A stretch of DNA of 64,000 bases, from positions 1 to 64,000 of the forward strand of contig NW_003314426.1 of the NCBI RefSeq assembly GCF_000143415.4. The letters run 5' to 3'. Shown piece by piece: positions 16,974 through 58,839 of the stretch. This DNA comes from Selaginella moellendorffii (taxonomy: Eukaryota > Plantae > Lycopodiophyta). Under the pieces are notes generated by a model. It had not been told where the DNA came from, searched no databases, and saw only the letters and a list, made by a program, of their open reading frames with translations. Position numbers and translations under genes: made by a program. How positions within the stretch are numbered: the first letter of the stretch is position 1; each line of letters begins with the position of its first letter.

Positions 16974-16977
<4 letters not shown>

Positions 16978-34011: not shown

Positions 34012-34228
34012 ATATGTTTCAAGAGATATGGTCATTTTATAATAATTAAATATAGGCTATAAGGTGAAAATCATATGTATTACATATATAAAGATGATTT
34101 TGCTGTGAAATATATATAAAAAGGTGATCATGCAAAGTATAAGAGTATCTATAACAATCAAAAGTTGGTAATATACTCATGTTTACAATACAAGCAATAG
34201 ACAAAATATTAGTGTGAAGGGATGGAAT

Positions 34229-34418: not shown

Positions 34419-35959
34419 GAAATATAAAAAACTCTCTTGAGAAAAGAGAGTTTTAAATTTGTATCCTAAATAACTTGGATAATCATAAAGGAATTCAAAG
34501 TACTCAACCATATATTATGTGGAGTCAACGTTAAGAGTAAAAGAAGAACTAATAGTCAATAAAACATCAGTAATATAAGCATGATAAGAATCCTCAGTTA
34601 AAGACAAAATAGGAGAAGATGATTCATCGATAGTAGTATATACTTGTTGCTGTTATCCACTAGAATTAGTAGCAATATAAGCTTAAGGGAGTTGCCATGG
34701 ATGAAGAATAACACGAGAAATTGAACAAGTATTATTTAGGTATTGATAACAAAATTAAAAAATATATGATAAAACCCAGAAGATTGATGATAAAGGCATG
34801 CTTATCAACCATAATTATAACAAATATTGCCCAAACCACCATAAGAATGAAATGAATTTTATTAAAAAGAGAACCACTTATTTGAAACATGAGCACTAAT
34901 AGATGGTGACTGAGAGTAAAGTGTCGGGGGAAGCATATTGAATAACGATTCTAATCACAAATTGCAGTAAGAGCAATCTTAAAATTATAATGATCTTTCA
35001 TCATAAGATTAGTAACCACAATAGAATACTTTAAAGGAAGAGTGTTCAAAAACCAAAGAAAGCAATCCTCAAGGGTGAGAGTCATATCTCAGTTGTAAGT
35101 CTAGTTGTATCATATAGCCTTTGTGATATTGCTTGGATCTATAATCCTTAGGTGAAAACTTGATGAAGTTCTTTGGTGTAGTTTGGATTGCGATTGTGAC
35201 TAATTGCGCCAGTCTACTGTTGTAATTGCAAAATGACAAAGGGCTTTTGATGTTATTGATTTTGTGTTGGTATAGTAATTCTCGCCCTAAAACAAGCTAC
35301 CAAACATAGGAATCAATTAAAAACTAATTTGAGACCTTCAATTCCCAAGAAGGCTCATGCAAGTGGTTGTGAGTAAGGATAAGCTTGATATTACTAGAAT
35401 ACCCCAAGTCGTGAGAAAATGGATGTGCATTGGTCATAAACTGGAATACAATAGAGAAGTGCTAACTCTCCCCCTTAACTACTCTTACATGGTGGCAACT
35501 GCCACTTCTTCATGAGTCATGATTGTTAACTACGGAGCTTTGTGCTTTCTTTAGCAAGCTGGTCATTGATGCATTGTGTTTCCGCACATATTGTCCTCTA
35601 GGACATATCTCTAGAGTTAGGATTTTGCTCTTTGCAATGGAGTGTCGAGTTTGAGTCCTTGTGGTAACTTTCTTGAGTTTTTTCTTTGTTGGTGTGGTAG
35701 TGTTGGAGAAGCTTGCTTCGTGTTAGTCTTTGGCATGTTTGTTAATGAGTCTTAAGAGATTTGTTAGTATCTAAGTCTTGTTTTTGGTCAAAGTTCTTCA
35801 AATTATTATTTTTCTTCATGTTGTTTTCTTGAGCTTGATTTTTCAAAGTCTTTCTTGTGTTGGATTTTTGAATTTGAGCTTCATGTTTTTTTATTGTGTT
35901 GAGTTCTTGAGCTTGAACTTTGTAAATCTTAAATGTGTTGAAATTTTGAGTTTGAGTCT

Positions 35960-36797
35960 TCATAGTCTTGATCTTTTGATCTTCATGCCTATAGTTCTTT
36001 TTGATATTTCATTCTTGATCTTTAAAACTAAAACCTTCATTTCTTTCAAGATTGTTGTTGATGATGTTTGAGTCGTATGATTGGTATTTCTTAAACTTGT
36101 TAAGGTTGACAATTTGGAGATGTTTGCCATTGAATGTTGCAATTGTTCCCATTCCTGGAGCTTTGAATTTTTGAATGAGGAATGGTCCTCCCCATCTTGA
36201 CTTCACTTTTGAGCCGATTTTCTCAATGTTTTTTAGAAACCAAAGTACTTGATCATTGATTTTGAATTCTTTATTTTTCTTTATTTTTCTCTTTTAGTCG
36301 TGGTTGGATTTTCTTCAAGCTTGAATGGCTTCAAGTGTCTAAATTGCTTATAGTCTTTCTTTATCAAGTTTTTTTAGTGTGACTAGTTTTTTTTTAATTT
36401 ATTCTTCTTGGTTGATCTCGTAGTGTATTGCTATTCACAATGAAGGACGATGTACTTGAATGGCTTCTAAGTCATAGGCAAGCTTGAATAGTGTCAAATT
36501 TGTTGAAACCTTGTATGTTGTTCAATATACCCATAAGGTATTGTAAATATAATTGTCCCAATCTTTCTAATTTGTTGAGTAGTCCAAAGAAGTCAAGTCC
36601 CTATCATTAAAATGGTTCCAATGGTGTTGTTAGATGAAGCTCTTAAGTTTGTTTCTTTGATGTGTACTTGGTTTGCTGACAAATGTTGCATTCTTGACAA
36701 AATTTTACTAATGTAGCTAAGATGGTTGGTTTATACATGTTGTTTGCCAGGTTTGTGAATAATCTTGGGCAAGTATTGGAGCCCTTGTTAAAGAATT
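35960..36797 (-). pseudogene. Heavily degraded older Ty3/gypsy pol relic (continues after 40413)
   Basis: KSRWGGPFLI (GPF/Y module); homologous to the clearer relic at 57240-58839. Confidence 0.6.
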
Positions 36798-39700
36798 TGT
36801 CAGGAATCCCCCAATTCTTGCCACATTCCTAACTCTCGCCAGATTCCTGACCCACAGGCCACATTCCTAACTCTCAAGACACGACCACATTCCTGACTCT
36901 TAAGACACTTCCCTATTCCTGACTCTTTGATTTCTTATATGATTCCTGATTCTCGGACCACATTCCTAATGATGATGTGGCACCTTCTCGACCTCAGTTA
37001 TATTTAGGCCGTCCTCAATCCAAGAGTGCTGAAGCTTCATCAACCTATAGTATATATAGGTTAGCCTTGTTCCATTTCTCCACAATCTGAATCAACACTA
37101 GTCTAAGGCCTTTTCTTCGTCTCCACTAGCTTTTCTCTTTGTCTTTTGCATTTTCCAGTTTTAATCTTATTGGGGGTTTTGACAGTTTGATTCAAATTGT
37201 GCTTTCTGCTTTTGCTTTAGCTCATTTTGATTGTTTGATTGCATTTGCCTTTTTCCCCCTTTTCTTTCTTCTTTGCTGATGGAGTCTTCAAGCCATCTTG
37301 ATTTCTTTGCTGAAGTCCTTGCAAAAATCCAGTCTGAGAATACCGAGCTAAAGGCGGCCCTTCTTCACATGCAACAGAAGCTTGCTTCACTTTGGGCTCA
37401 AGGATTAAGCAGAGTTCCTACCAAAGATGAGTTCCTACCAAAGATTAAGCAGACGTCTCTCTCAGGGGTCTCATCTTGCCTCAATCTATGCTACGGAGTT
37501 CCAACTCCTTGCCTTGGATACTCAATGGGATGAGCGGGCCTTGATTGATCAATTTCGTTTTGGCCTCAACAATAGTGTCAAGGATTTGTTGCTCACCATG
37601 GAGGATCCCACAGACCTGTTGGACGCCATCAACAAAGCTATTCGATGTGACAATCGTCTCTTTGAACGTTGTCAGGAAAGTCACCGCGCCACCGTTTTCC
37701 CGTCCCAGACTCAGGAATCCTAGCTTGAGTCTTCGAGGCATACTCCTGAACCTACTACTCCGGTCCCGATGGATATTTCTGGTACTCCCCGGCTCATCAA
37801 AGGGAAGCTGACTCCTGCTAAGAAGCAAAGTCGAGTATCTCAGAATCTTTGCCTCTACTGTGCTGATCCTAATCACAAAGCAACTGTGTGTCCCAAGAAG
37901 CCTCCCTGATTGCTTGAGTTCACTCTGCCTCAAGGTCCACCTCTATTGTAATTGGGAAACGACCCTGTCCAAACAGAGTAGGAGTTGTCTATTTGAACTC
38001 CCCAAATAAAAACAACTTTTCTTCTTTATCAAACTCCTCACCACCTTTCATCAAAGCCACCACCAATTCCCACAACTTTCGCATCCTATGTCTCCTTTCT
38101 TTCACCGAACAATCAGGACTTAAGGCTCTAGCGCTACTGGACTTGGGTGCAACTTCTTGCTTCATGGATACGGACTTTGATACCTGACATCACGTTCCTC
38201 TTTCTCCTACCATACGGGATCTTAGGGTTGAAGGCATTGGCGGGCAATTTGTGTCTCCATCTTCTGGACTTAGGAAAATGTTGCCTGTTCAAGTACATAT
38301 TGGGTCCAATGTCACTGATATCGCCAGGGCCTTCCTGATGCTCTTTCAAGACACTCCTATCTCAGTCTCAGGCCTTGTAATCCTACTTTCAATCAACAAG
38401 ATCAAATCATCCTTGGTCCTGATCAACTTCAAGTTATGGCAATTTCCTTGGCCCCTCAGGACTCCTCCTTGATGGACGCAATTAAAAATGATCTTCAATC
38501 TGACGACCTTGCTAGTGACATTTTCCCCCATCTTCAGGCTGGACATCTAGTGACTCCCGATTGCCGGCGATTTGACGAGTTTGAGTTCTTAGATGGCTTG
38601 TTATACCGTGGGGAGCAGCTTTACATTCCTGAAGGTGGTGCTCGAAGGTTGGTCCTGATAGCATGCCATGATAGCCCAACTGTTGGTCACTTCGGCATTG
38701 CGAAAACCTATGAGCTGGTTGCATAGGACTTTTGGTGGCCTCACATGGACAATTACATCAAAGCTTTTGTTACTTCTTGTGACACTTGTGCCCGGAATAA
38801 GGTACCTTGCCACCTTCCTTTAGGTTTGCTTCGTTCCCTCCCGGTCCCTTTAGGTCCTTGGGAATCCATCTCAATGGATTTCTTGAGTGATCTTTCGAGT
38901 TCTGGAGGCTTCAACAGCATTTTAGTCGTAGTGGATCGCTTCACAAAGATGGCGCACTTTGTGCCGTGTACCAAGGAGCTTTCAGGCAAGGACATGGCAA
39001 AACTGGTATTCAAGGAAATTTTCTGACTTCATAAGATTCTTGCAGATGTAGTTTCGGATCGGGGACCTCAGTTCATCTCTCATTTCTGGCAATGGTTCCT
39101 GCAGCTTCTTGGAGTGAAGGCCAACCTCTCTTCAGCGTATCATCCTCAAACTAATGGACAGTTTGAGCAAACGATTCAAACATTGGAACAATTCCTGAGG
39201 TGTTTCATCAACTATCATCAGGATGACTAGTTCGATATCCTTCCCCTTACTGAGTTCTCCTATAACAACTCCGTTCACTCCTTCCTTCGAATTTCCCCCT
39301 TCTTTGTAAACTTTGGTTGAAATCAATCTCTCACTTCCTTTTTCATCCGAATCCTTTCATTCAAATCCCTGCTTTGAAGCATTTATCTCTAACCTCTAGG
39401 AAATCCATAACTCCATCTCCTTCCACCTTTATCGTGCTCAGGAATCTCACAAAACATTCACCAATGTCCATTGTCAGGATTGTCCCTCTTACAATATCGG
39501 GGATAAAGTCTAGCTCCTTAGATGAAATATTTCCACCACTAGGCTATGTCCCAAACTCAATTTCAAACGCCTTGGTCCTTTCTCTATCACTGCCATCATT
39601 AATCCTGTCATTTATCACCTTGCACTTCCCTCCTCATATCAAATTCACCCCGTTTTTCACTCCTCTCTCCTTGAGCCTTATATTCCCAGTCCTATTCCAA

Positions 39701-40412
39701 ATCGGGTCATTCCTCTGCCTCCATCAGTGCAACTCGAAGATGGGTCTGAGTACAAGGTTCAGGACATCCTTGATTCCAAGATCTCACGGTCTAAACTCTA
39801 CTATCTAGTAGACTAGAAAGGTTACGGACCTAAAGAATGCACTTAGGAACCTGCAAACCACTTAATTCATTCTCCTGACCTTGTTCATGACTTCCACTAT
39901 TGCTATCTTTCTCATTCTAGTCTTCATTTTTTTCATTCCCCATCTCCCGTCCCACGACGCCCATCTCATCCTCCTCTTTGTTCTCATTCACATCCTCATT
40001 CCACTCATTCTTGAGGAGGGGGTGCTGTCAGGAATCCCCCAATTCTTGCCACATTCCTGACTCTCGCCAGATTCCTGACCCATAGAACACATTCCTGAAT
40101 CTCAAGACATGACCACATTCCTAACTCTTGAGACACTTCCCTATTCCTGACTCTCTGATTTCCCATATAATTCCTGATTCTTGGACCACATTCCTAATGA
40201 TGACGTGGCACCTCCTTGACCTCAGTTATATTTAGGCTGTCCTTGATCCAAGAGTGGTGGAGTTTCATCAACCTATAGTATATATAGGTTAGCTTTATTT
40301 CATTTCTCCACAATTTGAATCAACATCAGTCTAAGGTTTTTTCTTCGTTTCCACTAGTTTTTGTCTTTGTCTTTTGCATTTTCCAATCCTGATCTTGTTG
40401 GGGGTCTTGACA
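36798..40412 (+). mobile_element. Chromovirus (Tcn1/Tf1-like Ty3/gypsy) copy A, internally deleted
   Basis: 387-bp LTRs 36798-37184 and 40026-40412; TSD GAATT; PPT GAGGAGGGGGG; gag and integrase remnants; chromodomain EYKVQDILDSK...YYLVD*KGYG...EP at ~39745-39900. RT/RNase H deleted at ~38325. Confidence 0.94.
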
Positions 40413-41551: not shown

Positions 41552-42338
41552 TAGAGGGCACAAAATCCAGCCGTCTAAGATTGATGGCCTGGTGGTTAAA
41601 CACGAAAGAACTTAAGAGAGTTAAATATTGTTCTAGCTATTTAAAAATTAGAAACTAGTGGGGACACCATTTGTCCTGGTGTGCAACAGCTAGCAATTAA
41701 CATTAATATTCAATGGTATGCAAATGCCTCAATTTAAACAAATGCCGAGCCTCATTAGTTGTTATTCTTAGCATTCAAGTATGTTAAGAAATATATTAGA
41801 ATATACATTGTGATATATTTTAGATAGCACAAAAGAAATTTAGGAGTAGTATATTTTAAATAGCACAACAAATTATTTAAAAAGAGGAGTAGTACTCAAT
41901 GGAATTTAACAATTGGTTCCTCAAGGTATGGAAGAAACTAGAAACCTAGACAGATAAAATTGATGGATCAATTCCTCTCTCTCTCTCTCTCTCTCTATTT
42001 GTTGATTTTGCAGAGTTGTCAAAAAAGGTACTTGGCATTGGCTTTGAGGTTCCCATAGGCAAACTCATTCACTCTGTACCACAACAGAACTTGCAAGGGT
42101 GAGCTTTTAAGTGTTCTGAAGCTACTCTCTCTTGTTTTGACTTCCAGGTTCCGTGGATTCGAAAGGCCTGTAGGAAAACGTTTCACAAAGGTGCGGATAT
42201 TCTCTCTACAAAAATCAACAATCCCGCCATTTTCTTCATCGCATCTCCCGAGAATTCACTTGATCTCTGCCCACTTGAGATGAGATGCATGGATCCTACA
42301 AGAAGCCAGCCGTGGACACCACGCTGTTGCATCTCCCG
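41552..42338 (+). repeat. Left arm of long inverted repeat bracketing the kinase/phosphatase cassette
   Basis: Starts TAGAGGGCACAAAATCC, ends GTTGCATCTCCCG; diverged inverted homolog of 47758-48446 and direct homolog of 19131-19789. Confidence 0.8.
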
Positions 42339-43609
42339 AGCTATTTTGTTCAAGATGTGTGGTATACCGGCGTGAACTATAAATTGCAGTGCAGGATCAC
42401 ATTCTAACTGATTTAATGCTAGAAGCAGCTATGATATCTGACAACTCCAAAATGTTGAGCCTTTGCAACTTCCAATATGCTTTGTGGAAGGTCCCGATGG
42501 TAAGTTTGAGTTTTATTATTCTCGCAAGAAATTAACCAGCTAGGAAACCCAGAGCAGTTATTAAAGAAATACGTTCCATTTCTTTGTGAGGAGTGTCAGC
42601 AATCGCAACTAACACTGATACTCTTGAATTTTTTTTATCTGTGCATAATTTAGGTTGATTATGTTTCTCAGTTCGGTGCTGACCAGTATCTACGTCTGGG
42701 GAAACTTCTTGTATTGTGTAGGATCATCTCGTTCTTGGACTCCAACATAATAAAATTCCATCGAGAAGAAATACTAATCTTCTCTATTGCAGGTTCGTGA
42801 TAGTATTTATCTTATTTTCGCAAAACTTTCCAGGAAGTTTACTGTTAATTCTCCTTGGGCATACTTCCGATGCTGTTTCTTTTCTGTTGGAAAGCTCAGT
42901 GTTTTACTTGTTGTCACTAACACTAATACCAGATAGCACTACGCCTGAACATCCTAGCATGGTTTATTTCTGAAACTTCTATTTCGGACGAGAAGCAGTT
43001 ACTGTTGGCCGTGGTTGGCTGCATTGTAGCTCTTGCAAGCACTTTGAAGGTAAATCTTGATTTCATAATTTAAACCAGTCTTAAATCTTTGTTTGTAGTC
43101 TGTGCCATGCGGTGCTTTAAAGAAATCAAGCAGGAAGGTCAAGTCTTGAAGATTTCTGTGCTTTTGCGAGCCATACATGACAATTCCAAGAACTTCGTAA
43201 ACAACAGGAGGTTTTTGTCATCCTTTCTTCATACTAGTCTGCTCAGCGAATGAGAGCAAGACAATTAGAACATGTGGTACGTTTCATTAAGTTGCACCTC
43301 CGCCAACAATTTCAATCTTTCTAAGAACTTCAGACATCTCCCACCTTGCTTTGTTGGTTCGATCCAGCTGAAAATTATTGACTTGCCAGAAGGAACGAAA
43401 GCAGAAAAGAATTCCTTGATATGTTTCGTTACATGTATACTTCTTTTCTTTCTGGCATGTCACCAGTTTTCTATGTTGGATCAAATCAATAGAGCAAGGC
43501 GGCTGTATGAAAGATTGAGACCCTCTGCATTAGCTATTGCATCAACAACCCACAGATGTATGGCTAAGGGAGGGATGGAAATGAGTGGGATGACCATAAC
43601 CTAAACGAG

Positions 43610-44671
43610 ACGCAGACAAGGTGGCTTTGACAACCTCTTGGTCATCTCGTCTGTGCTCAAGCAAAGTATCCATGAAATCCGTTGTGGGATCGGATTTGTT
43701 GGCTTTGTGTTCGTCGATGATCTTCTGGCTTTGTGTTCTTCTGGCTTTGTGTTCGTCGATGATCACGCTATCTTTGAAGCAAGCAGGCGCTTCGTCAGCG
43801 ACCAGCTGCGCCAGCAGAGCAATGTGACTATCTTCTGCTGGCCCATAGAATGAAGCAATGGAGACTCGAGTTCGCTCCGAGTTGACAACTGCTCGGTGCT
43901 CCACACTCTTGTACGCATCATTGGAAAGAATCTGAATAACACACAATCAAAACCTGGAAATCTCATGCATGCACGACTATGACGATCGAAAGAAAGCTTA
44001 CCTGAAGTTGATCTCCAATGTTGACAACAAAGGCGCCAGGCAGAGGTTTGATCGGCACCCACGCTCCACAGTGTACAATCTGGAGGCCATCTTTCACCCT
44101 GGTGTCCTGCTGGAGTATAGTGAAACCGTTTGGATCCGCGTGAGCGTCCAGTCCGATTGTAAGCTCCGGCTCCGGACAAGGTGGATAGTAGTTCATCCTC
44201 ATCGCATGCCTCTCTCCTCCAAAAGCTTCCTCCAGAGCACCACTTTCCAGTCCCAGTGACTCCGAGAACAATCCAAGCACTCTTTTCGCGGCGACGAACG
44301 AGACGTGGGTGGGGCGGACGACTGAATCGCTGGCGAGGGCGAGGAAGAGATGAATCGCTTGCGCGCTCTGGCCGTTTGCGCAGAGCGTCGAGATCACGAT
44401 GTTACAGGAGAAGGCGTTCTTGTGGACGAGATCGTGGAAGACGGACCATGCGTCCGGGAGGCTGGAGCACTTGCCATACATGAGGATGAGGAGATTGCTG
44501 AACAAGGGGTGGTGGCGTAGGTCGAGGGTGGCGGCCAGGCGGCGGTGCAAGAGCTTCCCTCGCGGGAGGGAGTTGGAATCACCACATTGGCGCAGAAGAG
44601 TCGCGATTTGGCGTGGAGATGCCTGCAGGAGGCACCGCGATCACTCCTCTTGCTACTTCGCTGGATGTCAT
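43610..44671 (-). pseudogene. Chimeric PPR / 2OG-Fe(II) dioxygenase / P450-like fragments, copy 2
   Basis: ORFs 43963-44550 and 43542-43946; retains HAD, VEH and RVS residues of the 2OG-dioxygenase core; frameshift near the PPR ATG. Confidence 0.85.
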
Positions 44672-45103
44672 GGCAAAGACACACTCTCTCTCTCTCTCTC
44701 CATGATCCTGTGAAGAGCTTCATATGGATCATCACATTTTTTGTCAATAGCTTCACATAGGCACTAAACAACAGACATAAAGGAACTCAGAAGCAATCAG
44801 TCTTCTAAGCATCTTATCCTCCGGCATCAAATGTTGGATCAGTGATGTCCTTTTTGAAGTCTCGCTTGTTGTTTGAGGTGGGCACGTGCTCCTATGGGGG
44901 TGTTGCAAAGCTGTGGGCTCTCAATGTAAAGGGGATTTCCTTGGCAAAAGAGCTTGAAATTTTGGTGTGCTGTTTTTCTTGTTTTACCATTTTGTTTTAC
45001 ATGAGACATGTAGGAAATCCTGAGCTCAAAAGTTCACTAAGATTCATTTGCATAAACTACACTTTGGCAGAAAAATTATAACATTTATTACAAAATACAA
45101 TAA

Positions 45104-45691
45104 TCAGTTAAAAACAACCCATTCATCATCGAATGGATCTAGGACGTACAATTTGCCTTGCTTCTCCACACATTGTCCAATATTCCAGCGATGGGTAACT
45201 TTGGTAAAATCCACACACTTTGACAGCGCAAGAAGGAACGGGGTTACATCTGCCAAGAAGTGGTCATCCTTTGACCCCTCAAACTTTGGAGCCACCACCA
45301 CGCTCTCTTGATGACCTTGGTAGAAGTCAACAATGTCATCCAGTGCCACCACCCGCTTGAAATCCCGAAACCCTACATGGTCAAGATTCTTGACTTTCGT
45401 CCCGTCCTTTAGAACAACGCAATTGCCACCATGTAGCCTCCTTGACACAAGCCCCCCAGTAGGATCCAGATGGTCAACCACAAGGTTGACATACTTCTCC
45501 TGGGCGGCACTAAACACCACGATATCGTACACTTTTGAAACCTTCCCCAGAAATTCATCTACGCCTGGTCTCTTCATGATGTGGAGTGGTGCATCATCGT
45601 CGAATTCCATGCTGAAATCTACAGAAGAGACGAGATCCTTATGAGCGTATACCAGTGTATTGTCTAGATCGAGAATGAGTGTCTTCTTCAT
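45104..45691 (-). CDS. FCP1/SCP-like HAD phosphatase, 195 aa, copy 2
   Basis: One amino-acid difference from 21856-22443. Confidence 0.9.
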   Translation of the reverse strand: MKKTLILDLDNTLVYAHKDLVSSVDFSMEFDDDAPLHIMKRPGVDEFLGKVSKVYDIVVFSAAQEKYVNLVVDHLDPTGGLVSRRLHGGNCVVLKDGTKVKNLDHVGFRDFKRVVALDDIVDFYQGHQESVVVAPKFEGSKDDHFLADVTPFLLALSKCVDFTKVTHRWNIGQCVEKQGKLYVLDPFDDEWVVFN

Positions 45692-46117
45692 GATACCCTA
45701 AAAAATGACTCGTATTCCGTGGAAATGTAGAAGGGCCACAAAAGGTGACCAAAGGTGCCACGTCTGCCCTAAACTCTATCCGACGTGGCCTTTTTGTATT
45801 CTTGTACCCTACTATTGGCAAAGCCCAAGGGAGCCGGAGGAGCGCGTCGATCCTCAATGCAGCTTAGATTCCAAATCTAGGGCTGCCGTGATCGTCTGGC
45901 AAGGGCAGAGGTGAGTGCGCTGCTGGTTTGCGGCCTACTGTTGGCGAGGCGGAAGGAGGTGAGCATGCAATTGTAACAAGTTTGTTGTGAATCCATTGAC
46001 GGACAGCTGATGTGCGCATTCTAGGCTCCAGCCGTTGGATAAGTGCAGTAACGACTCCTCAATCTCTTTTGTGCTTTCAGCAACGACTCACAATGTTAAC
46101 ACTGACCAGAGTCCACC

Positions 46118-47533
46118 ATGGAGAGGAAGAGAGCTGCTGGTCCGAAGAAACTACACACTCAGAAGCGATCCGACGTCATGCTCGAAAGGACCCGCCCACT
46201 GGATCCGATTAACCGAGCTCGATCAGGTTGGTCAAAACTTGAAACATCTGCACTTGTCTGACGAAGATCCTCGTTGAAGCAGGAGCAGGAGAAACTGATC
46301 ATGATGCATCCGCGTTGCAGGCTGCTCCTGACGCTGGTACGAAGAATTCCTTTTGTTGGCTGACACGACTCTTTGCTGGTTTGATTCATGACTTGCAGAA
46401 TATGTTCGGCAATTCCTCGCAATGGCGCAACGCTTGGAGAGATTCAAGATGCTCTCGGCGAATGTTGTGAGCGGGATCGTGGAATCGATCCAAAAGGGAG
46501 GGGAGACTCCAGTTGCAGCAGCAGGTGGATACAATAATTTCTCTCTTTGGCATCTTTTCGCTTCTGAGTGGCCCCTTGTCTCTCTTGTCCAGGCCGCTTC
46601 TGCAGCAGCTACGAAGTGCTCGCTTGTGTTGGCCAGGGGGCGTCCGGGAAAGTATACAAGTGCCGTAGCAAGGAGGACGAACAAATCTACGCCATCAAAG
46701 TCATCAAGGTTCGCACAGCAACGAAGTCCAGAGACCAGGATGTCGCGCTCGTCTTCAAGGAGGGAGAGATGCTCCAGCGCTGCGAACACCCCAACATAGT
46801 CAAATACTTCGACATGTGGAAGGAGGAAGGCGAGCCGGGCAAGTCGAAAGTGTACATTGTCATGGAGTTTTGTGGCCGCTCGCTCCAGTCGGTGCTCCTC
46901 GGCGGTGAGTCACCACCTGCAGATGCGTTTAGGCAGCTTCTTCAAGCTGTGGCGCATGTGCACGACAACGTGGGTGTTCATCGGGATATAGCACCACACA
47001 ACATCTTCGTCACAGACGATGGACGCATCAAGCTGGGAGATTTCGGTCTTGGTAGGCAAATGAAACATCTCTTCCATCTCTCATTTGTTGGCTTACAGCT
47101 AAAAATAAGGAGTCCATGCTCGAGACCGAAAATATCAAGAAGGGGAGAGCAGTTTACTACTCTCCCCAGCGCCGGAGCAACTCAACCTACACTGACATGC
47201 TTGCGCTTGGAGTTATACTCTTCGAACTTCATTGGAGGTGTCCCCCGGACCAGGTTTGGCTGCAGTTTGTGCAACGTGCTTGCTTAGTTTGGTGAATCTG
47301 TGTAGGAAAGGGAGTCGGTATTGATTGACGTCCGGGATGGCGTTTTACCAGCAGACTGGGCGTACCAACACCCATCAATTGCGCCCAAGGTGTTGGAGCT
47401 GGTCGCAGCAAGACGCGACCAGCGTCCATCCGCGCGCGACATCCTCTGCGATCCTGCCTGGCAATCTGTTTGGTGAGTTTCTTTCATTACTCTGATTCTC
47501 TGCTTGGCTTCTAACATGTCTGTTTGCAGCTGA
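46118..47533 (+). CDS. Stand-alone eIF2alpha-kinase (GCN2-like) protein kinase, 7 exons, ~357 aa, copy 2
   Basis: Hand-built model join(46118-46226,46283-46336,46399-46524,46593-47051,47099-47253,47306-47472,47530-47533) = 1074 nt, no internal stop, all GT-AG introns of 47-68 bp, start in CCACCATGG context. C-lobe ERESVLIDVRDGVLPADW...RPSARDIL resembles eIF2alpha kinases. The 5' exons are less certain than the kinase exons. Confidence 0.8.
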
Positions 47534-47757
47534 TCGTTGTAGTTGTTTAGATTTACTTGCTCCTTTTTGTCATCTTTGTAGTCTTGGTCTTTTTCAGCAT
47601 GCTGATTTCGATTCAGAAATATGAATTCGTTGCCAGTTCATTGCATTTCTGCCAGGCCGAGTTGTTCTCGATCAAGGTTGCTGAACAACTCAAGGGCTTC
47701 CGACATTCTTGTAGTCAGGTTCGGTTCAAGGAACAGGATTGGTAAACAGCACATTGA

Positions 47758-48136
47758 CGGGAGATGCAACAGCGTGGTGTCCACGGCTGGCTTCTTGTAG
47801 GGTCCATGCATCTCACCTCAAGTGGGCAGAGATCGAGTGGAAGCTGGAGAGCTATCCCAATTCTCGGGAGATGCGATGAAGAAAATGGCGGGATTGTTGA
47901 TTTTTGTAGAGAGAATATTCGCACCTTTGACCTGTTGACCTTTTTACAGGGAAACGTTTTCCTACAGGCCTTTCTGAATTGAATCCAAGGAACCTGGAAG
48001 TCAAAACAAGAGAGTAGCTTCAGAACACTCAAAAGCTCACCCCTGCAAGTTCTGTTGTGGTACAGGGTGAATGAGTTCCCCTTTTTTGACGAGTCTGCAA
48101 AATTATAGAAAGGATGAGTCAAATGGAGAGAGAGAG

Positions 48137-48211
<75 letters not shown>

Positions 48212-48446
48212 TTGATCCAGGTTTCTTGTTTTTTTCATACCTTGAGGAACCAATCGTTCAATTCCACTGATTTCTTTGCATACTTGAATGCAAAGAATAA
48301 CAAATAATGAAGCTAGGTGCTTGGTTAGATTGAGGCAAGTTTTCAAATAGCTAGAACAATCTTTAGCTCTTTTAAGTTGTTTAGTGTTTAACCATCATGA
48401 CATCAATCTTAAAACATGTCCAGAAGTTGGATTTTGTGCCCTCTAG
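47758..48446 (-). repeat. Right arm of long inverted repeat; contains (AT)n at 48139-48208
   Basis: Ends GGATTTTGTGCCCTCTA; reverse complement of 41552-42338 with indels. Confidence 0.8.
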
Positions 48447-48617
48447 ATTAATGATGTTAATTTTAGACTCTTTGTCAGTGTTAATCCTTGTAATTTATAG
48501 GATAATATAGAGTTTCTCATATATTGTTTTTCAAATTTTACTTGATACTCTTCCAGTTCTAGATATGAGGCAAAATAAAGAACTTCATAGTATTTTATAT
48601 GAAAACTTTAAAGTTGC

Positions 48618-51600
48618 AAATCATTATGACCGCCATATTCAGTCTCCTCGCCATTGGCACCAACAGTGTTGACATTCTCATGGCCATCATCTTTGTCATT
48701 CGGCATGTCTTCATTGTTGCCTCTTGTAGCTTCTTGGTGGGTTGGTGTATAATTTGGCATCTCTAATTCCCAAGGACAAGCTTGCTTTATTGCCGCTGGA
48801 AACTTCATTGTTGTCGGGTACATGCCTCCATCTCTCACACCATGCTTTAGGAGTCGTGTGCATACCAGTGTTTCGAGAGGAATACCTCTATATTAGAGAT
48901 ACCTATAATAGAATATAAACAAATTGAGTATAGTTGAGAAATTGTATGTTACCTAAAAGCCGCTCGACGCATGAAGTAAAGTTGGCCAAGTTGTTTATCA
49001 AATGGAGTCGTGCTTGTGGCCTTCTTTGGCAGCCAGTCCTCTCCGAGTTTTATAAGCTTAGTGGTGATGAAGTCCTTGAATGGAAATTGCTCAAGATCAT
49101 CCCCTATAAAAGGTGCTAGACACATCTCCCCTTCATATACAGTTAGTGAAATGTAGACGGTCCTCCTCATCACAGTCTCCATTATACTGTCCAAACCTTT
49201 TTCTCCTTCCCTGAGTCTGTTATTAAGGTTGTTGAGAATGTGTATCTATTCCTCATATGTAAGCTTTGACTTTGAGATGTTGTAAATAATCTCATCTGGA
49301 GTCTTGCCCACTAAGAAATAACTTTTGTGAGTAACCTTCATGTAAACGCAAACAATACTTACTTTCATGACAAGAAATTTCTATTATAATATCAAACCAC
49401 TCCTTTGGGCGTCGAGGGTCAGCCACACTAAGTAATTTCTTTTCCTTTGTCTTCTTTGTGTTGTTGATTTTCTTGTCAATTGTAGCTAATGCTCCAATAG
49501 TTCTTGATCATTTTCAGCTCGATACGATTGTGCATATGCATCTTGCTTAACCTTCACCAATAGCTGAAGATAACACAAACATTCTATGATAAGAAGTATA
49601 CTTGGAAAAACATACCTTACTCCACACAGCTGTTATAAAAGCTATTGGATTCTTGTACCATCTATTAGCATCTTGACGACCTTGATGATGCCGAATAAGT
49701 GATGCTAAATCATCACCATAGTGGCTGCAGACTGCATCCTCGTCGAGATTGGCAAGAAACCGGATTTGCTCAATATCATGTACTAGGCTTCGTTTCTGCA
49801 CTGCAAACTATCCTAACTTGCAAAACACATCTTATTTCAGAAAGTTTTCTTTGCCAACATTTTGATCTTTCTCTCAGTTCTATTTCATTGGAGGCTGTGA
49901 TTTGCAACAACATTGGTGTAGTTGAACAATTGGAGTTTCTTCTTTTAGGTGTAGGTGAAGGTGGACAACATTGGGATTTGCAACATTCCAAGTCAAAGGA
50001 GATTCGAGTTTTTGGATCTCCAATCAAAGTGCGAGGCTGCAATCCTGCCAAAGTGAATGTGAAGCAAGATTCAGTCGTCATCATTTCTTCCTATTCTAGT
50101 TCTAATGAAGATTTTAGTCTAGTGCGAGCTAAGAATTTCCAAACTCGAACTACACCGATATTCAAAGTTGGTTGCAATGCTTTCCAGTTTTTGCACCTCT
50201 CTATCGACGTGTGTTCCTTTCCGAATAGGCCTGTTAGCGAGCTCCCATCTACATACAATGGCAATATCTTCTTTGAATTACCACTTTTTGTCAGCTCAAA
50301 ACAAAAGGGGATAGAGACGAAACAGGACTTTCACAACTAGTGCAAGATTAAGACCACACATTTCCAGCATTTCAAAGGCACAGTGTCCATGGTTCATTGT
50401 GGTGGGTATTTGGATTGTGTGAATAAAGCATGCAATTGAGAGCGTGGTAAAAAACTCCATATTTTTTGAAGGATCTACAACCAATCCTCCCATCTGTGAC
50501 ACTATTGGTGTTGGATTCAAGTGTCAGTTTTGCAAGAATGCTCCATTGTGTTGTGCCATCTACGGGGCCAAAATGTACTATTTTCTTCCATGGGATGGAG
50601 AGGCTAGTAGAGCTGCAGTATATTGGCATGCACACACATCCAATGCAGGAAGGGATACAAAGGAGTTCAGTCAACCGTTTCAAAGATGCAATGCAAATAG
50701 TGACTGTAAGAAACTCATCTATAACTCTAAAGCATATTCAAAAGACAGTGCTTAAGGATTTTATCACAAGCACTTTACTTGATCTAGACTGCAAGAATAC
50801 TCAACTGGATGAGACTAGCTTGCGGGAGTTACTACGACATGTGCAACTTGCAACTAGCCTCAGGAGGTATGAAAATATTATTACATACTTTTCAATAATA
50901 TCTCTTTTACATTTTGTTTTATTTAGGATAAAATCTTGGATGTGTGAATCTCGAGAGGGGAAACTCCAATAAAAAATCAACTCAATCCTTGAACTAAAAT
51001 GGATTTATCCCTACGAGTTTATCCACTTTATCAAGCCAGATTTCCAATTAGCATTTAAAGAGTTGTGCAAACAATGGCAGGCTGCACCTTCTGAAGAAGA
51101 GCACGAGGCAAAAACAAACAAAATCTGAATGTGGTGGCATAAAAATAGCCATACTGACGTAAGTTGTCTACCACAACTTGAGTCATGGTTGAGGTGGTGG
51201 GAAGTTAGAATGTTCCAATGGGGATATCACTCTTTTTAGATTGGTTTTTCTTTTTTTCCTCTCTTTTTATTGCTTTTTAATATCATCTTTTTATAAGGAT
51301 CAACTACTTAAAGATCTTGCATACACCCCAACTTTGAATCTCTCAGAGAGTAAATATTGGAGCTGGCGTTCCTTTGAGGCAGGGAAAGGGAAAATGAGTC
51401 TATATGAAGCATGTCTATCAAATTTGATACACGCTGTAGAGCAGTCTTCAAAAGCCTTGGCATTTGAGGAAGGAAGATACATAGGAATAGGACTTTCGGT
51501 TAAGATGTTACAAGAAGAAAGTGACTCCACCAGCACAAACAATGGCAACTGCAGTGGAGGAAGTGGTCCGTGGAACATCTATGGAGTACACTCCTCGGGC

Positions 51601-53132
51601 TTCTATTGGTGATATGAAGACCATCCGCTCAAAGCGTCACTTTTCCTTTGCTGGTGAAGATGTTAGCACAGATCTTGGAGCAAAAAGCTCTCACAAGCTT
51701 GATGTTGAGTATCATTCTGCTCCAAGACATCACCCCCCAACTGAGCCACCTCAAGTGGCTAATGAAGAAAGTGCATCACAACAAGTTGAAATTACTTATC
51801 ATAGCGTAGAGCAGAAGCAATGGGCAATCCATCGAGTGCCAGCAAAATCAAATGTAAGGTGTGTGGGGATACTTCCGAGGGGCAAGTGTTGGGCTTGGAT
51901 CTGTGGTAACAAGTCTGCTTCTATTCCAGCCCCATATTTCCATGGGGAATGAAAGCAAGTAAAATTTTCAAGATGGTGTTGGTTATATTGCTACAACATT
52001 GATGTCAACCATACAAAGTGGCTTGAAGACACTATAGAGACTAAACCTGATGCAGTACCTAAAGAATGGCCAGTTGCTAATGGGGTTGCGCTCACCTCGG
52101 ATGAGATTGAAAACCTTGAGAAATCTGGTTTTAATCTTGAAAGGTAAGGCAGTTAAATTTATTGGTACCATCTCCAAGTAGAAGCAAGGTAAAATAAACT
52201 TGGCTCAAACACTTGAGTATAAGATTCTCTCCACGAAGTACATCATTGCGTTTGCAAAGGAGTACATAGTCAAAATAAAAGGTGGAAAGTACACAATTGC
52301 CATTCAAGACTTTCCTTTTTGCACATGTTCAAACTTTACGAAATGCGAGGAATATGGGAAGGCATATGCTTCTTGTAAGCATATGTACTACATCTTCATC
52401 AACATCTTACACCAAGATCCTAAAGTGGATATTCATATACACCAAGCAAGCCTTACTATTGCCGAGTTGCAGAAAACTTTTGGAGCTAATTAGATTTTCC
52501 AGCACTATCGATGTTTATTCTCTATCAATAATATAAATTAATTATACCTTATATAATTAATAAAAATATTTTATTATTTCACTTTTCATTTCATATACTT
52601 GTGAGGGTTCTTTTCGTAATACTACCCATAGTATTCGTGAGTCTCCATTTTTGTCTTTATCATCTCAAAAAATATTTCATAGTAGTCTTTTGGGTGCGTG
52701 ATGTTGCAATGTATTGTGAGAGCATATGTACTATCATAGTTGTGTTTTTTCCCTTTCAAATGATTATATGTCCTTATATATAATCTTAATTCAAATTTAA
52801 TAATTTTAAAATTCTAATGAACCTGACATTTACTAGCTAGAAAGCACAGAGTACAAATTTAAAGAAGTGACAAGAATACTTTTTTTGCAAACATTTTATT
52901 TTATGTTCTAACAAACGTCTCTATCATTGCATGTAGTAAATATTTAAATTATTAAAACAAGAAGTGTCCTTTAGAACATTTTTATCTATATAATATATAA
53001 AGAGTTATGAAATTATTAAGTTCACCATAACTTTAAAATTTTAAAGTTTATAATGTTTGTACTAAATTGCAATTGAAAATTGAGCTCAACTCGTGAGCTC
53101 AACTGTTCTACTCGTGAGCTCAAGTATGGTCT
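48618..53132. mobile_element. MULE-like transposon, copy 3 (centre deleted)
   Basis: 48618-49829 matches accessory gene 11885-13095 reversed, fused directly to the transposase 5' part. Terminal motif 53078-53132. Confidence 0.82.
49830..52493 (+). pseudogene. Transposase copy 3 (D1-D2 region deleted near 51025; GCM-like domain, E motif and SWIM retained)
   Basis: ORFs 49699, 50444 (GFKCQFCKNAPLCCA), 51241 (LNLSESKYWSW), 52200 (FCTCSNF...SCKHMYY). Confidence 0.82.
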
Positions 53133-54024
53133 GCACTCTGGATCAGGAAGTTATTAATTATTTTTGTTTTATTTCTAATCTAGATGTAATATAAAATAAA
53201 TAAGGAAGTATACAGTAACTTAAAAATGAATTTTGCTTACAGCATTATTTATTATATAGCTAGCAATATAATAATAATAATAAATAAATTTGCTCTAAAT
53301 TATAAATAAATTATAAGAAAATATGTCTCTGATATATTATTTTTCAATTATAGTTAATCACTTGGATCCCTTGGAAATGATGAACTTGAAAAGATTACAC
53401 AATGGCTAGTGCAAAATTTGTTTTAGAATCTTGTTGTAGAGTAACTAATAGAGCAACAATAGTATGCATAGCATTTTTAGTTTACTTTAGAAAATATAGT
53501 GTAAAGCATATACCTAAAATATTTAATATATAATAAAATATTCCTCATTCTAAGGGTTATAATTTCTTGCTGTTAAACTTTTCTATAATTCATTTTTATC
53601 AAGATTTAATTCTAATATTCTTGGGGGATGGGGAGGGGGGGCAGCTTCCTATTTACTCCACTAGCTAACATGGTATGGATCTTAAGCTTAGACCTAAGCC
53701 AAATGTAAAATAAAGATAGACACACCTTTAATATCCTTGCGCTAGACCATTAATATGTTGAAATAATGATTTAGCTTTGTTTTACATGTTTGTTTTAATG
53801 TTGGGATGCTAAAAGTTTTAAGACTATTTTAATGTTGTTTTGTGCTCCTGTTTCATCGCTCCTTAGTTGCATATTCAAGAGTTGTTCCATACTTTTATTT
53901 TTTTGTTCATTAGGCATATGCTTAGAAGTTTGATTCTATCATTTTGTTTAGTGGCCTAAGGCCCTAAAACTTAGGTGTTGCCCTTAGCACACATATCTCA
54001 AAAGTTAGGTCTGTTCCATTGCTA

Positions 54025-54544
54025 NNNNNNNNNNNNNNNNNNNNNNNNNNNNNNNNNNNNNNNNNNNNNNNNNNNNNNNNNNNNNNNNNNNNNNNNNNNN
54101 NNNNNNNNNNNNNNNNNNNNNNNNNNNNNNNNNNNNNNNNNNNNNNNNNNNNNNNNNNNNNNNNNNNNNNNNNNNNNNNNNNNNNNNNNNNNNNNNNNNN
54201 NNNNNNNNNNNNNNNNNNNNNNNNNNNNNNNNNNNNNNNNNNNNNNNNNNNNNNNNNNNNNNNNNNNNNNNNNNNNNNNNNNNNNNNNNNNNNNNNNNNN
54301 NNNNNNNNNNNNNNNNNNNNNNNNNNNNNNNNNNNNNNNNNNNNNNNNNNNNNNNNNNNNNNNNNNNNNNNNNNNNNNNNNNNNNNNNNNNNNNNNNNNN
54401 NNNNNNNNNNNNNNNNNNNNNNNNNNNNNNNNNNNNNNNNNNNNNNNNNNNNNNNNNNNNNNNNNNNNNNNNNNNNNNNNNNNNNNNNNNNNNNNNNNNN
54501 NNNNNNNNNNNNNNNNNNNNNNNNNNNNNNNNNNNNNNNNNNNN
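54025..54544. other. Assembly gap (N)
   Basis: Run of N. Confidence 1.
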
Positions 54545-57239
54545 GTTTGGCGTGGTTGACCAACCTGAAACATTATCTAACTTCTTATTAGGTATGTTTA
54601 TTTTTGTTTTACATTTGGCTTAAGTTTAAGCCCAAACTTTGTACTATATTAGCTGGTGGAATATTTTTATGTTAGGCCACCATTATGTTGTCATGATGTC
54701 ATTAAGCCCAATACTATTCAACCTTAGGTATTTAAACTAAAGGACACTTAACTCTAAATATTTTGAAACCTTTAATTGATTGAAAAAAAGGGGTACACTT
54801 TTATTCATCCCTTTATATTTAAACTCTATAGATCATCTATTAAGTCATTCCCTTTAGTTATTTATAATTCATTATGTTTCTCTATAAGTTCTTTATAGAT
54901 GCAACTTTCTTGACACTGTACAAGTCAAGCCTAATTGGAATAAATTAGACTTGCTAAATGTTAATCTCAACATATGGTATAATTCCTCTAGCCAACTGAA
55001 AGTCAAACCCAAGATCCCTCTAATACTAAATGTAAGCTCATAAATTTAAACTTTTTGGGAGGTCATCCAACTTAGGTTATTCAAACCCAAGAACATTTAA
55101 CCCCAAGTATTCCAAGACCTCTAACTGATTAAAAAACAGGTTACACTTTTATTTATGGGCCCTTTCCCCTTATATTTGAATATCATATATCATTTCTTGA
55201 GTCATTCCTATTAGTTGTTTACAATATGTTTCAAGAGATATGGTCATTTTATAATAATTAACTATAGGCTATAAGGTGAAAATCATATGTATTACATATA
55301 TAAAGATGATTTTGTTGTGAAATATATATATAAAAAGATGATCATGCAAAGTAAAAGAGTATCCATAACAATCAAAAGTTGGTAATATACTCATGTTTAC
55401 AATACAAGCAATAGACAAAATATTAGTGTGAAGGGATGGAATTATAAACTTTTAAATTTAAATTTCTTGGGAAGTCATCAAACCTATTACTACTCAACTA
55501 AAAGATATGTATTAAGTATTCCAAAACCCTTAATTGATTGGAAAATAAAATACACTTTTGTTCATAAGCCTTTTCCCTTTGTATTTAAATCTTTACATAT
55601 CATTTCTCAAATTATTCTTTTTGGTTGATTACAGAAATATAAAAAACTCTCTTGAGAAAAAGAGAGTTTTAAATTTGTATCCTAAATAACTTGGATAATC
55701 ATAAAGGAATTCAAAGTACTCAACCATATATTATGTGGCATCAGAGTCAACGTTAAGAGTAAAAGAAGAACTAATAGTCAATAAAACACCAGTAATATAA
55801 GCATGATAAGAATCCTTAGTTAAAGACAAAATAGGAGAAGATGATTCATCGATAGTAGTATATACTTGTTGCTGTTATCCACTAGAACTAGTAGCAATAT
55901 AAGCTTAAGGGAGTTGCCATGGATGAAGAATAACATGAGAAATTGAACAAGTATTATTTAGGTATTGATAACAAAATTAAAAAATATGGTTAGAACGATA
56001 ATAAAACCCAGAAGATTGATGATAAAGGCATGCTTATCAACCATAATTATAACAACTATTGCCCAAACCACCATAAGAATGAAATGAATTTTTTAAAAAA
56101 GAGAACCACTTATTTGAAACATGAGCATTAATAGATGGTGACTGAGAGTAAAGTGTCGGGGGAAGCATATTGAACAACAATTCTAATCACAAATTGCAGT
56201 ATGAGCAATCTTAAAATTATAATGATCATTCATCATAAGATTAGTAACCACAATAGAATACTTTAAAGGAAGAGTGTTCAAAAACCAAAGAAAGCAATCC
56301 TCAAGGGTAAGAGTCATATCTCAGCTGTAAGTCTAGTTATATCATATAGCCTTTGTGATATTGCTTGGATCTATAATTCTTAGGTGAAAACTTGATGAAG
56401 TTCTTTGGTGTAGTTTGGATTGCGATTGCGACTAATTGCGCTAGTCTGCTGTTGTAGTTGCAAAATGACAAAGGGCTTTTGATGTCGTTGATCTTGTGTT
56501 GGTACAGTAATTCTTGCCCTAGAACAAAATACCAAACACAAGAATCAATTAAAAACTAACTTGAGATCTTCAATGCTCAAGAAGGCTCATGCAAATGGTT
56601 GTGAGTAAGGATAGGCTTGATATTACTAGAATACTCCAAGTCGTGAGAAAATGGATGTGCATTAGTCATAAACTGGAATACAATAGAGAAGTGCTAACTC
56701 TCCCCCTTAATTACTCTTACATGGTGGCAACTGCCACTTCTTCATGAGTCATGACTGTCAACTACGAAGCTCTACACTTTTTTTAGCGAGCTGGTCATTG
56801 ATGCATTGTGTTTCTGCACATACTGTCCTCTAGGACATAACTCTAGAGTTAGGATTTTGCTCTTTGCAATGGAGTGTCAAGTTTGAGTCCTTGTGGTAGC
56901 TTTCTTGAGTTTTTTCTTTGTTGGTGTGGTAGTGTTGGAGAAGCTTGCTTCGTGTTAGTCTTTGGCATGTTTGTTAATGAGTCTTAAGAGATTTGTTAGT
57001 ATCTAAGTCTTGTTTTTGGTCAAAGTTCTTCAAATTATTATTTTTCTTCATGTTGTTTTCTTGAATTTGATTTTTCAGAGTTTTTTCTTGTGTTGGATTT
57101 TTGAATTTGAGCTTTGTGTTTTTTTATTGTGTTGAGTTCTTAAACTTTTACTTTGTAAATCTTAAATGTGTTGAAATTTTGAGTTTGAGTCTTTATAGTT
57201 TTGATCTTTTGATCTTCATGCCTGTAGTTCTTCTTGATA

Positions 57240-58839
57240 TTTCATTCTTGATTTTCAAAACTAAAACCTTCGTTTCTTTCAAGATTGTTGTTGATGATGT
57301 TTGAGTCGTATGATTGGTATTTCTTAAGCTTGTTAAGTTTGACGGTTTGGAGATGTTTGTCATTGAATGTTGCGATTGTTCCCATTCTTGGAGCTTTGAA
57401 TTTTTGAATGAAGAATGGTCCTTCCCATCTTGACTTCACTTTCAAGCCGATTTTCTCAATGTTTTTTAGAAACCAAAGTACTTGATCATTGATCTTGAAT
57501 TCTTTATTTTTCTTTAATTTTCTCTTTTAGTCATGGTTAGATTTTCTTCAAGCTTTAATGGCTTCGAGTGTCTAAATTGCTTATAGTTTTTCTTTATCAA
57601 GTTTTTCTAGTGTGACTAGTTTTTTTTTAATTGATTCTTCTTGGTTGATCTCGTAGTGTATTGCCATTCACAATGAAGGACGATGTACTTGAGTGGTGTT
57701 AGGGCTTCTAAGTCATAGGCAAGCTTGAATAATGTCGAATTTGTTGAAACCTTGTATGTTGTTCAATATACCCATAAGGTATTGTAAATATGATTGTCCC
57801 AATCTTTCTAATTTATTTTTATGATTTTCTTGAGGATGTTCTTAAGTGTCTTGTTTGTCAACTCTGTTTAACCGTTGCCTTGAGGGTAGTATAGTGTTAA
57901 AGCCTTATGCTTGTTTCTCTTGAAACTTGTTATGAGTAGTCCAAAGAAGTCAAGTCTCTATTGTTAAAATGGTTCCAGTGATGTTGTTAGATGAAGCTCT
58001 TGAGTTTGTTTCTTTGATGTGTACTTGGTTTGTTGACAAATGTTGCATTCTCGACAAAATTTTACTAAGTTATGCCAAAGTGTTAGCCACCAGAGTCCTA
58101 CTTGCAAAATCTTGTGAGCTGTGATTTCTTCTATGAAGTGGCCTCTTGCTTGTCCATAGTGGGCTTCTCCGAGTCGATCTTGAGTTCTTCAAGTTGTACA
58201 CATCTTTGTAGCACATTGTCTCGTTCATTTTTGTACAATCTTCCTCCCACGACTGAATACCTTAAGGCAAATTGTTTACGGTGATTAGAGATGGAGTATC
58301 AATTTGGAATTATTGTTGTTATGAGGTAGTAGTAGATGTCATTCGTCCATGTTGATGATGTGTGGATGCAAAGTATGTTGGAGTCAGGAAAGTCGTCCAT
58401 ATTATATTTTAGTTGTTCACTAGTTGTAATGTAGCTAAGGTGGTTGGTTTATACATGTTGTTTGCCAGGTTTGTGAATAATCTTGAAGTTGTATGCTTGA
58501 AGTAATAAGAACCATCAGGCAATTCTACCGGTGAAGATGGTTTTGTTGAGGAGATGTAAAAGTGCTTTGTAGTTAACAATGATCTTGACTTTGGTGTCGA
58601 GTAGGTAGTGTCAAAACTTTTATAGTGCATAGACCATTGCTAAAACTTCTTTTTTAGTGGTGGTGTAGTTCATCTCAACTGAGTTGAGTCTTCAACTCGC
58701 ATAGTAAATTGGTCGGTCTTTGAGGTTTTATTGTTGTTGAGAAAGTATTGCTCTGATGGCATAATCAAAGGTGTCAATGTGTATTGAAGTCTTTGTCCCA
58801 GTTTGGTTGGGTGAGTATTGGAGCCCTTGTTAAGGAATT
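57240..58839 (-). pseudogene. Degraded older Ty3/gypsy RNase H-integrase relic
   Basis: Minus strand gives EMNYTTTKKEVLAMVYAL (~58630-58685), YYPQGNG*TELTNKTLK (~57840-57895) and KSRWEGPF (ORF 57242-57445). Confidence 0.75.

Follow-up and report, generated by a model that had tools for sequence, protein, structure and literature searches.

A head-to-head PEK-family kinase and small phosphatase in recent duplications of the Selaginella moellendorffii genome

This study concerns two genes that lie head to head at positions 45104–47533 of a 64,000-nucleotide stretch of Selaginella moellendorffii DNA (contig NW_003314426.1, positions 1 to 64,000; hereafter the window). The window is nuclear DNA of this lycophyte: its encoded proteins are identical to RefSeq/GenBank entries of the species, and loci from assembly GCA_000143415.2 match its sequence. 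One of the two genes encodes a stand-alone protein kinase that appears to be a relative of the eIF2-alpha kinases, the PEK family of GCN2, PERK, HRI and PKR/PKZ, and the other encodes a small phosphatase. We consider it probable that this is a nuclear gene pair recently multiplied by segmental duplication, within which an atypical PEK-family kinase is conserved and the phosphatase is a linked passenger.

Organization of the gene pair

The phosphatase open reading frame (ORF) occupies 45104–45691 on the reverse strand and encodes 195 amino acids, with no intron, no interruption and a full-length Pfam NIF domain (E=8e-37). A divergent intergenic region of 426 bp (45692–46117) separates its start codon from that of the kinase gene, which runs along the forward strand from 46118 to 47533 in seven exons (46118–46226, 46280–46336, 46399–46524, 46593–47051, 47099–47253, 47306–47472 and 47530–47533). 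The exons total 1077 nt, and the six introns, of 47–68 nt each, all follow the GT..AG rule. The product is 358 or 357 amino acids long. An exon-by-exon check found every kinase exon peptide in RefSeq XP_024523035.1 (P0123; 358 residues, “eIF2-alpha kinase-like”); P0124 contains them too, and the 357-residue isoform X2 results from a NAGNAG acceptor at exon 2. The coordinates, the head-to-head layout, the 426-bp gap and the six-intron gene model given in a first-pass annotation of this DNA thus proved exact. The gene is already annotated yet uncharacterized, a literature search having found no paper on these Selaginella genes. All full-length kinase analyses below are based on the database protein P0123.

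The main kinase exon, at 46593–47051 on the forward strand, extends from the glycine loop to the DFG motif, includes an HRDIAPHN catalytic loop and matches Pfam Pkinase at E=1e-34. Residues 1–36 (window 46118–46225) carry Lys/Arg clusters that by eye resemble a bipartite nuclear localization signal. The short intergenic region may hold a promoter common to the two genes.

A second copy of the pair lies upstream in the opposite orientation. The inverted repeat formed by 19463–22659 and 44888–48084 carries both genes, with the kinase of this copy A at 20014–21429 on the reverse strand (encoding P0121) and its phosphatase ORF at 21856–22443 on the forward strand (195 amino acids; 100% identity to P0135 by tblastn). 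Copies A and B, the latter being the pair at 45104–47533, differ at 6 of ~3000 aligned bases (99.8% identity): the phosphatases are distinguished by a single Thr/Ile change, and the kinase exons by one synonymous and one Ser/Thr change. That the genes are open in both copies had been noted earlier, and they are, but at this identity the openness of copy A is expected by chance and is uninformative on selection; we therefore rejected it as a sign of constraint. A third, degenerate phosphatase fragment at 17643–18135 on the forward strand (tblastn 75% identity over residues 1–178, with an internal deletion) has no adjoining kinase.

Placement of the kinase in the PEK family

Searches at the level of sequence, profile, phylogeny and fold point in one direction. 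When P0123 was compared with all solved structures by phmmer, HRI came first (1e-29), then PERK and GCN2, with NEK1 close behind. The best single-domain match to the duplicated kinase is another S. moellendorffii protein, P0142 (D8T4S3 / SELMODRAFT_161006; 396 amino acids, 40% identity), and a profile of P0123 plus P0142 returned GCN2, HRI, PERK or PKR as all of its first 19 distinct matches among solved structures (126–168 bits), NEK1 (122 bits) and Myt1 (107 bits) both scoring below the PEKs. Membership of the WEE1/Myt1 group was rejected on these score rankings, in which Wee1 stood outside the top 60, the tree described next having no WEE rows. Bacterial kinase models in NCBIfam gave sub-threshold matches only and were likewise set aside.

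In an IQ-TREE phylogeny of 62 kinase domains (LG+C20+F+G4), the duplicated kinase pairs with P0142 (support 96/97), and the two nest among HRI, PERK, PKR/PKZ and unnamed PEK-like proteins in a clade of 27 rows (97/95) that excludes the NEK, CAMK, STE20, bacterial and other kinases. The tree contained no GCN2, WEE1 or Myt1 rows, and the position of the kinase relative to plant GCN2 and the WEE family comes from score rankings. Constraining the two to join the clade that contains NEK cost 19.7 log-likelihood units and was rejected by the approximately unbiased (AU) test (p=0.02), with the alternative group picked after the tree had been seen. Structural modeling agrees with this placement: an AlphaFold2 model of the kinase has a mean predicted local distance difference test score (pLDDT) of 77.7, mostly above 85 in the kinase core, and a Foldseek search with it returned GCN2, PERK or PKR at ranks 1–45, followed by Nek2 and Myt1.

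Outside the kinase domain there is little to recognize. Pfam and NCBIfam report a kinase domain only, with no RWD, HisRS-like, dsRNA-binding, haem-binding or luminal domain, and the N-terminal ~95 amino acids match no family in either collection; in the AlphaFold2 model residues 1–50 are disordered and residues 55–87 form two helices. Between strands beta4 and beta5, where HRI and PERK have long inserts, the alignment shows just a few extra residues. The case for a stand-alone PEK-family relative devoid of a sensor domain is thus supported by sequence and predicted fold relationships, and the earlier claim of an eIF2alpha-kinase relative without RWD domain, HisRS-like domain or long insert is borne out, as is its grouping with HRI, PERK and PKR (97/95, in the tree lacking GCN2, WEE1 and Myt1) rather than outside the eIF2alpha kinases. 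The narrower label “GCN2-like” holds at the level of the PEK family but claims too much: the scores of HRI, PERK and GCN2 are similar, and because the tree has no GCN2 sequences, “GCN2-like” cannot be told from “PEK-like”.

Remodeled catalytic and docking residues

The first-pass annotation had described the catalytic core as intact apart from an APE motif reading SPQ. As far as the named residues go this is accurate, since the glycine loop, K133, E154, the HRD aspartate Asp229, N234 and DFG (D247) are all present, but other positions have changed: the catalytic-loop Lys and the P+1 “GT”, both of which had been overlooked, together with the activation-loop Thr and the position equivalent to PKR Thr487. 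The canonical Ser/Thr kinase motif set is therefore incomplete in this protein, with the loop Lys replaced by Ala (residue 231 of the HRDIAPHN loop) and the APE Glu by Gln. Of ~530 catalytic loops in the retrieved proteins, 499 have Lys, and Ala is found only in the duplicated-kinase family and in P0142, where APE reads SPK. In the activation-loop column of PKR Thr446, nearly all PEK rows have Thr and one PKR-type domain has Ser, but P0123 has Asn there and P0142 has Gly. Directly before the alphaG ER motif, the PKR Thr487 column is Pro in P0123 and something other than Thr in P0142.

These four changes—loop Lys, APE Glu, activation-loop Thr and Thr487 position—set the duplicated kinase apart from the aligned PEK rows. 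With the family it shares the NIF ending of the catalytic loop, the alphaG motif ER..VL..VRDG.LP and first rank in sequence, profile and fold comparisons; unlike it, the members of the family have sensor domains, a long insert, the loop Lys, the activation-loop Thr, the APE Glu and Thr487. P0142 resembles the duplicated kinase in its HRDIAPxN loop (HRDIAPKN), in the loss of the APE Glu and in its sister position in the tree (96/97). It departs from it in retaining the P+1 “GT” (PKR Gly450-Thr451), which reads “GR” in the duplicated kinase only, and in being apparently single-copy, with a three-member cluster on one scaffold. Because the residue changes are common to two proteins that are just 40% identical, they are old and have been maintained in a small subfamily, rather than being the product of recent decay.

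What these substitutions mean for substrate choice can be gauged against PKR. A deep mutational scan placed Gly450, Thr451 and Thr487 among the few highly constrained sites of PKR, where Thr487 stabilizes helix alphaG and brings about the alteration of eIF2-alpha on which its phosphorylation depends (PMC11556786). An unregulated but otherwise canonical eIF2-alpha kinase, constitutively phosphorylating Ser51 and so providing a second, non-GCN2 route to translational shut-off, would be in keeping with the PEK-clade placement and with conservation of the alphaG motif. The Pro at the Thr487 position and the Arg at the Thr451 position, both highly constrained in PKR (PMC11556786), speak against such an enzyme, as does the missing catalytic-loop Lys, and we regard it as very unlikely. 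Judged by its residues, the duplicated kinase would not be a canonical eIF2-alpha kinase; the dominant-negative or unregulated eIF2-alpha-kinase role first proposed for it is possible.

Could the protein instead be a regulatory pseudokinase or decoy, of low activity, that modulates plant GCN2 or sequesters eIF2-alpha as a mimic of a PEK domain? The loss of the loop Lys, the APE Glu, the activation-loop Thr and, in the duplicated copy, the P+1 Thr, with the fold and the N-lobe kept, is what such a protein might display, and there is a precedent for a PEK-derived inhibitor in baculovirus PK2, which inhibits host eIF2-alpha kinases (10.1101/2025.02.05.636571). Like the duplicated kinase, PK2 is short, PEK-derived and without sensor domains (10.1101/2025.02.05.636571). 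The likeness has its limits, however: PK2 consists of an N-terminal extension and a mimic of the C-lobe only, whereas the Selaginella protein is a full kinase domain of two lobes with ATP-binding residues. Moreover, both of the 40%-identical paralogs keep the glycine loop, the Lys of VAIK, the Glu of alphaC, the Asp of HRD, the Asn and DFG, which fits an ATP-using enzyme. On balance a decoy function seems rather unlikely.

The catalytic loop offers one further lead. Tyrosine kinases have Arg at the +4 position of the loop, where the duplicated kinase has His and P0142 has Lys, a likeness that we treat as a lead only. It could be taken to define a PEK-derived subfamily with a tyrosine-kinase-like charge shift (HRD-x-Ala-x-[His/Lys]-Asn), linked to the phosphatase since before the two paralogous pairs diverged and present in more than 10 copies, that would serve as a sensor-less, plant-specific phospho-switch acting on a substrate other than eIF2-alpha. 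This elaboration is distinctly improbable as a whole.

Relatives and distribution of the kinase

When 1.84 billion cluster representatives were scanned with HMMER, nothing but the kinase's own representative exceeded 40% identity, and two word-based searches found no relative above that level outside S. moellendorffii. In the databases searched, the kinase thus appears to be restricted to one species. The best named non-Selaginella relatives in a word-based search are bird HRI proteins. The ten top long matches examined consist mainly of fish proteins of tandem PKR/PKZ type and include a mite protein under the name PERK. A PEK subfamily distinct from GCN2 and of sporadic occurrence, “PEK_PEK”, is already recognized in catalogues of plant kinomes (10.1101/2020.09.15.298612). 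The Selaginella genes may be among its members, a possibility based on description only, no member list of “PEK_PEK” having been found.

The gene models of P0142 and of P0289, on a 565-kb scaffold, have a pantothenate-kinase (Fumble) domain, its end or the whole of it, upstream of the kinase; either a merged gene model or a genuine fusion may account for this arrangement. RefSeq names the P0142 models variously “wee1-like protein kinase 2” and “eIF2-alpha kinase”.

A viral origin was considered and rejected. Searching viral contigs with alignments of the phosphatase and of the kinase produced family-level matches only (24–34% identity, mostly giant-virus bins), and a fold search of BFVD gave 15–26% identity only; neither revealed a specific sequence relationship of the Selaginella kinase to viral kinases. 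The top viral fold matches include stand-alone kinases of 356–416 amino acids from Klosneuvirus KNV1, Faunusvirus and ChoanoV1, with ~19–20% identity to the Selaginella kinase, and one giant-virus kinase among the top BFVD matches is named eIF2-alpha kinase 1.

The phosphatase

The partner had been called an FCP1-type phosphatase. It does have an FCP-homology domain and does stand head to head with the kinase, but it is of the SCP1/Dullard type: among solved structures its best match is human SCP1/CTDSP1 (E ~1e-20), followed by CTDNEP1 (Dullard) and Tim50, with FCP1 reaching only 1e-5. Two NCBIfam models match but fall short of their cut-offs: the one for dullard-like proteins, TIGR02251, reaches 114 bits where 139 are required, and the FCP1-like TIGR02250 reaches 52 where 135 are required. 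The 195-residue protein is a single domain without a BRCT domain and hence not FCP1 proper.

Aligned to SCP1, the protein has every motif in place—DLDNT, Ser at Thr152, Lys at Lys190, and LDD with the Asp206 equivalent—making an active SCP-type small phosphatase plausible. It shares the NIF domain, the DxDxT motif and a single domain of ~190 amino acids with SCP1/CTDSP and Dullard/CTDNEP1, yet it is just ~30% identical to them and has a C-terminal tail of its own. That tail is family-specific and is common to the 204-residue paralog P0138 (54% identity), one of the relatives recovered by a word search, all of which are S. moellendorffii proteins.

Variation among the copies

Seventeen protein models, encoded on at least nine scaffolds, belong to the cluster that the kinase forms at 90%. 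To compare copies at the DNA level, nine loci were fetched by exact identity of their encoded kinase to P0121 or P0001, one of them (L001) being copy A of the window; in all there are 10 distinct loci on 9 scaffolds, at 97–99.9% identity. A core of ~3 kb, equivalent to 44950–47968 of the window, is common to all copies at the same range of identity.

The two genes behave differently within this set. Kinase exons have two nonsynonymous and four synonymous variable sites (ratio of nonsynonymous to synonymous polymorphism, pN/pS, ~0.15, p=0.027), and all full-length proteins of the kinase family together vary at just five residues. The phosphatase ORF has ten nonsynonymous and five synonymous variable sites (pN/pS ~0.57, not significant); it is intact in eight of the 10 loci and frameshifted in the other two, L002 and L007, where it stands beside an identical kinase protein. 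The sample is unbiased for the phosphatase, which is drifting in near-neutral evolution. Of the noncoding parts, the kinase introns vary at 4 of 339 sites, and the intergenic region, with 13 of 426 sites variable and indels of up to 20 bp across the 10 copies, is more variable than either coding region.

These patterns bear on whether kinase and phosphatase form a writer/eraser module, in which the two would be co-expressed from the 426-bp divergent promoter, act on the same substrate and have had their linkage selected. The head-to-head arrangement, the retention of all catalytic motifs in the phosphatase and the existence of one diverged S. moellendorffii paralog for each protein (P0142 at 40% for the kinase, P0138 at 54% for the phosphatase) are congenial to the idea. 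It sits poorly with near-neutral evolution of the phosphatase, its frameshifts in two of 10 loci beside an unchanged kinase, and a degree of variation in the intergenic region that exceeds that of every other part of the unit, and we hold such a module to be unlikely, while giving it more credence than any other alternative weighed here.

Duplication and the question of mobility

In most copies the repeat unit corresponds to 44288–48617 of the window and comprises a fragment of a PPR gene, the phosphatase, the kinase and a 3' region, at 97–99.9% identity to loci on eight further scaffolds. Its ends differ between loci, with recurrent breakpoints at 44287/44288 and 48617. At the former, a chimeric pseudogene ORF (43963–44550, reverse strand) joins the PPR fragment to a fragment of a 2OG-Fe(II) oxygenase, precisely at 44288. 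At locus L002 the two are separate gene models, for a PPR protein of 420 amino acids and a 2OG-Fe(II) oxygenase of 345 amino acids (L002:571–3176), and the match between the L002 oxygenase and the window ends at the 44288 junction. The window also contains a 261-residue PPR ORF at 16191–16976 on the reverse strand; this ORF and the L002 PPR and oxygenase genes look like the sources of the chimera. At 48617 two continuations are seen: another repeat, or ~670 bp and then a partial copy of the phosphatase. A (TA)n microsatellite lies in the 3' part of the unit at 48139–48208, and alignments between copies break at 48150–48197; further interruptions coincide with (CT)n and (TA)n microsatellites.

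Beyond the unit, the flanks are mosaic. Four loci share the larger repeat context of the window (94–99% covered by window sequence), five lie outside it (28–57% covered), and some copies stand at scaffold ends. Within the window, repeat blocks of ~13–15 kb flank both copies at 25099–40292 and 48614–63661, in direct orientation and spaced 21–24 kb apart, and an inverted partial copy of this large flanking repeat occupies the window start (59–13097). The simplest reading is that the copies are local tandem and inverted segmental duplications, partly collapsed or split in a draft assembly of two haplotypes.

The surroundings are rich in remains of long terminal repeat (LTR) retrotransposons. Pol and gag remains of one such element lie at 1984–5859 on the reverse strand, with ORFs matching integrase (H2C2 + rve), RNase H, aspartic protease/reverse transcriptase and gag, and a further gag fragment is found at 59315–59953.

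Two candidate sets of transposon ends were examined. Inspection by eye and with BLAST found no terminal inverted repeats, target duplications or Helitron-like ends at 44288 or 48617, and these were rejected as transposon termini in favor of rearrangement breakpoints. An inverted repeat of ~480 bp (41895–42370 versus 47750–48271, 78–83% identity) brackets the PPR–oxygenase chimera, the phosphatase and the kinase and is seen in copy B, L003, L008 and L009. The idea that the genes are transposon cargo between these arms was rejected, as the repeat occurs only in some loci and has no matching target duplication; it predates the amplification and does not form the termini of the unit.

The first-pass annotation had speculated about a toxin–antidote-like pair in a mobile cassette, and neither half of this found support. 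Such a selfish element, with the kinase as poison, the phosphatase as antidote and a transposon as the means of spread, might be suspected from the many copies at 97–99.9% identity on many scaffolds and from the transposon-rich neighborhood. The two loci that keep an identical kinase beside a broken phosphatase argue against an obligatory antidote, as does the near-neutral evolution of the phosphatase, although rescue in trans is conceivable given many copies. On the side of mobility, the recurrent ends lack transposon hallmarks and the breakpoints form a mosaic; the flanks are built from tandem and inverted duplications, and several copies lie at the ends of scaffolds, a pattern that a collapsed local array would produce; viral relatives are found at family level at most. 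We find a selfish cassette barely credible.

A probably conserved kinase and its proposed passenger

The account that we favor, and consider probable, is segmental duplication: an ordinary S. moellendorffii gene pair would have been copied many times, and recently, in a repeat-rich region. Its kinase would be a lineage-restricted offshoot of the PEK family without a sensor, composed of a kinase domain and an N-terminal extension of ~95 amino acids that combines disordered and helical parts. ATP- and Mg-binding residues are retained, and the catalytic and substrate-docking apparatus appears remodeled, with HRDIAPxN in place of HRDxKPxN. The most likely role of such a protein would be that of an atypical kinase, sensor-less and controlled at the level of transcription, or of a weakly active scaffold, and it probably does not recognize eIF2-alpha in the canonical manner. 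The phosphatase, with a complete set of catalytic motifs yet drifting and sometimes broken in a young repeat family, would be a passenger rather than an obligatory partner.

Some points weigh against this account. The replacement of the loop Lys by Ala could indicate a pseudokinase, and the kinase's position relative to plant GCN2 and the WEE family is supported by score rankings only. Furthermore, constraint on the kinase is suggestive only: its pN/pS signal is biased by locus sampling, because fetching loci by exact kinase identity excludes extra nonsynonymous changes by design.

The weight to be placed on the locus is reduced by its prior annotation, its apparent confinement to a single species, the lack of several canonical eIF2-alpha recognition residues and the want of support for poison–antidote or mobile readings. 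Land plants are usually credited with GCN2 as their sole eIF2-alpha kinase. A multi-copy, apparently conserved, PEK-derived kinase in a lycophyte is an object for asking whether plants had other members of the PEK family, and what roles these may have played. The Lys-to-Ala catalytic loop common to both paralogs likewise provides a test case for how far a PEK kinase may be remodeled and still be retained.

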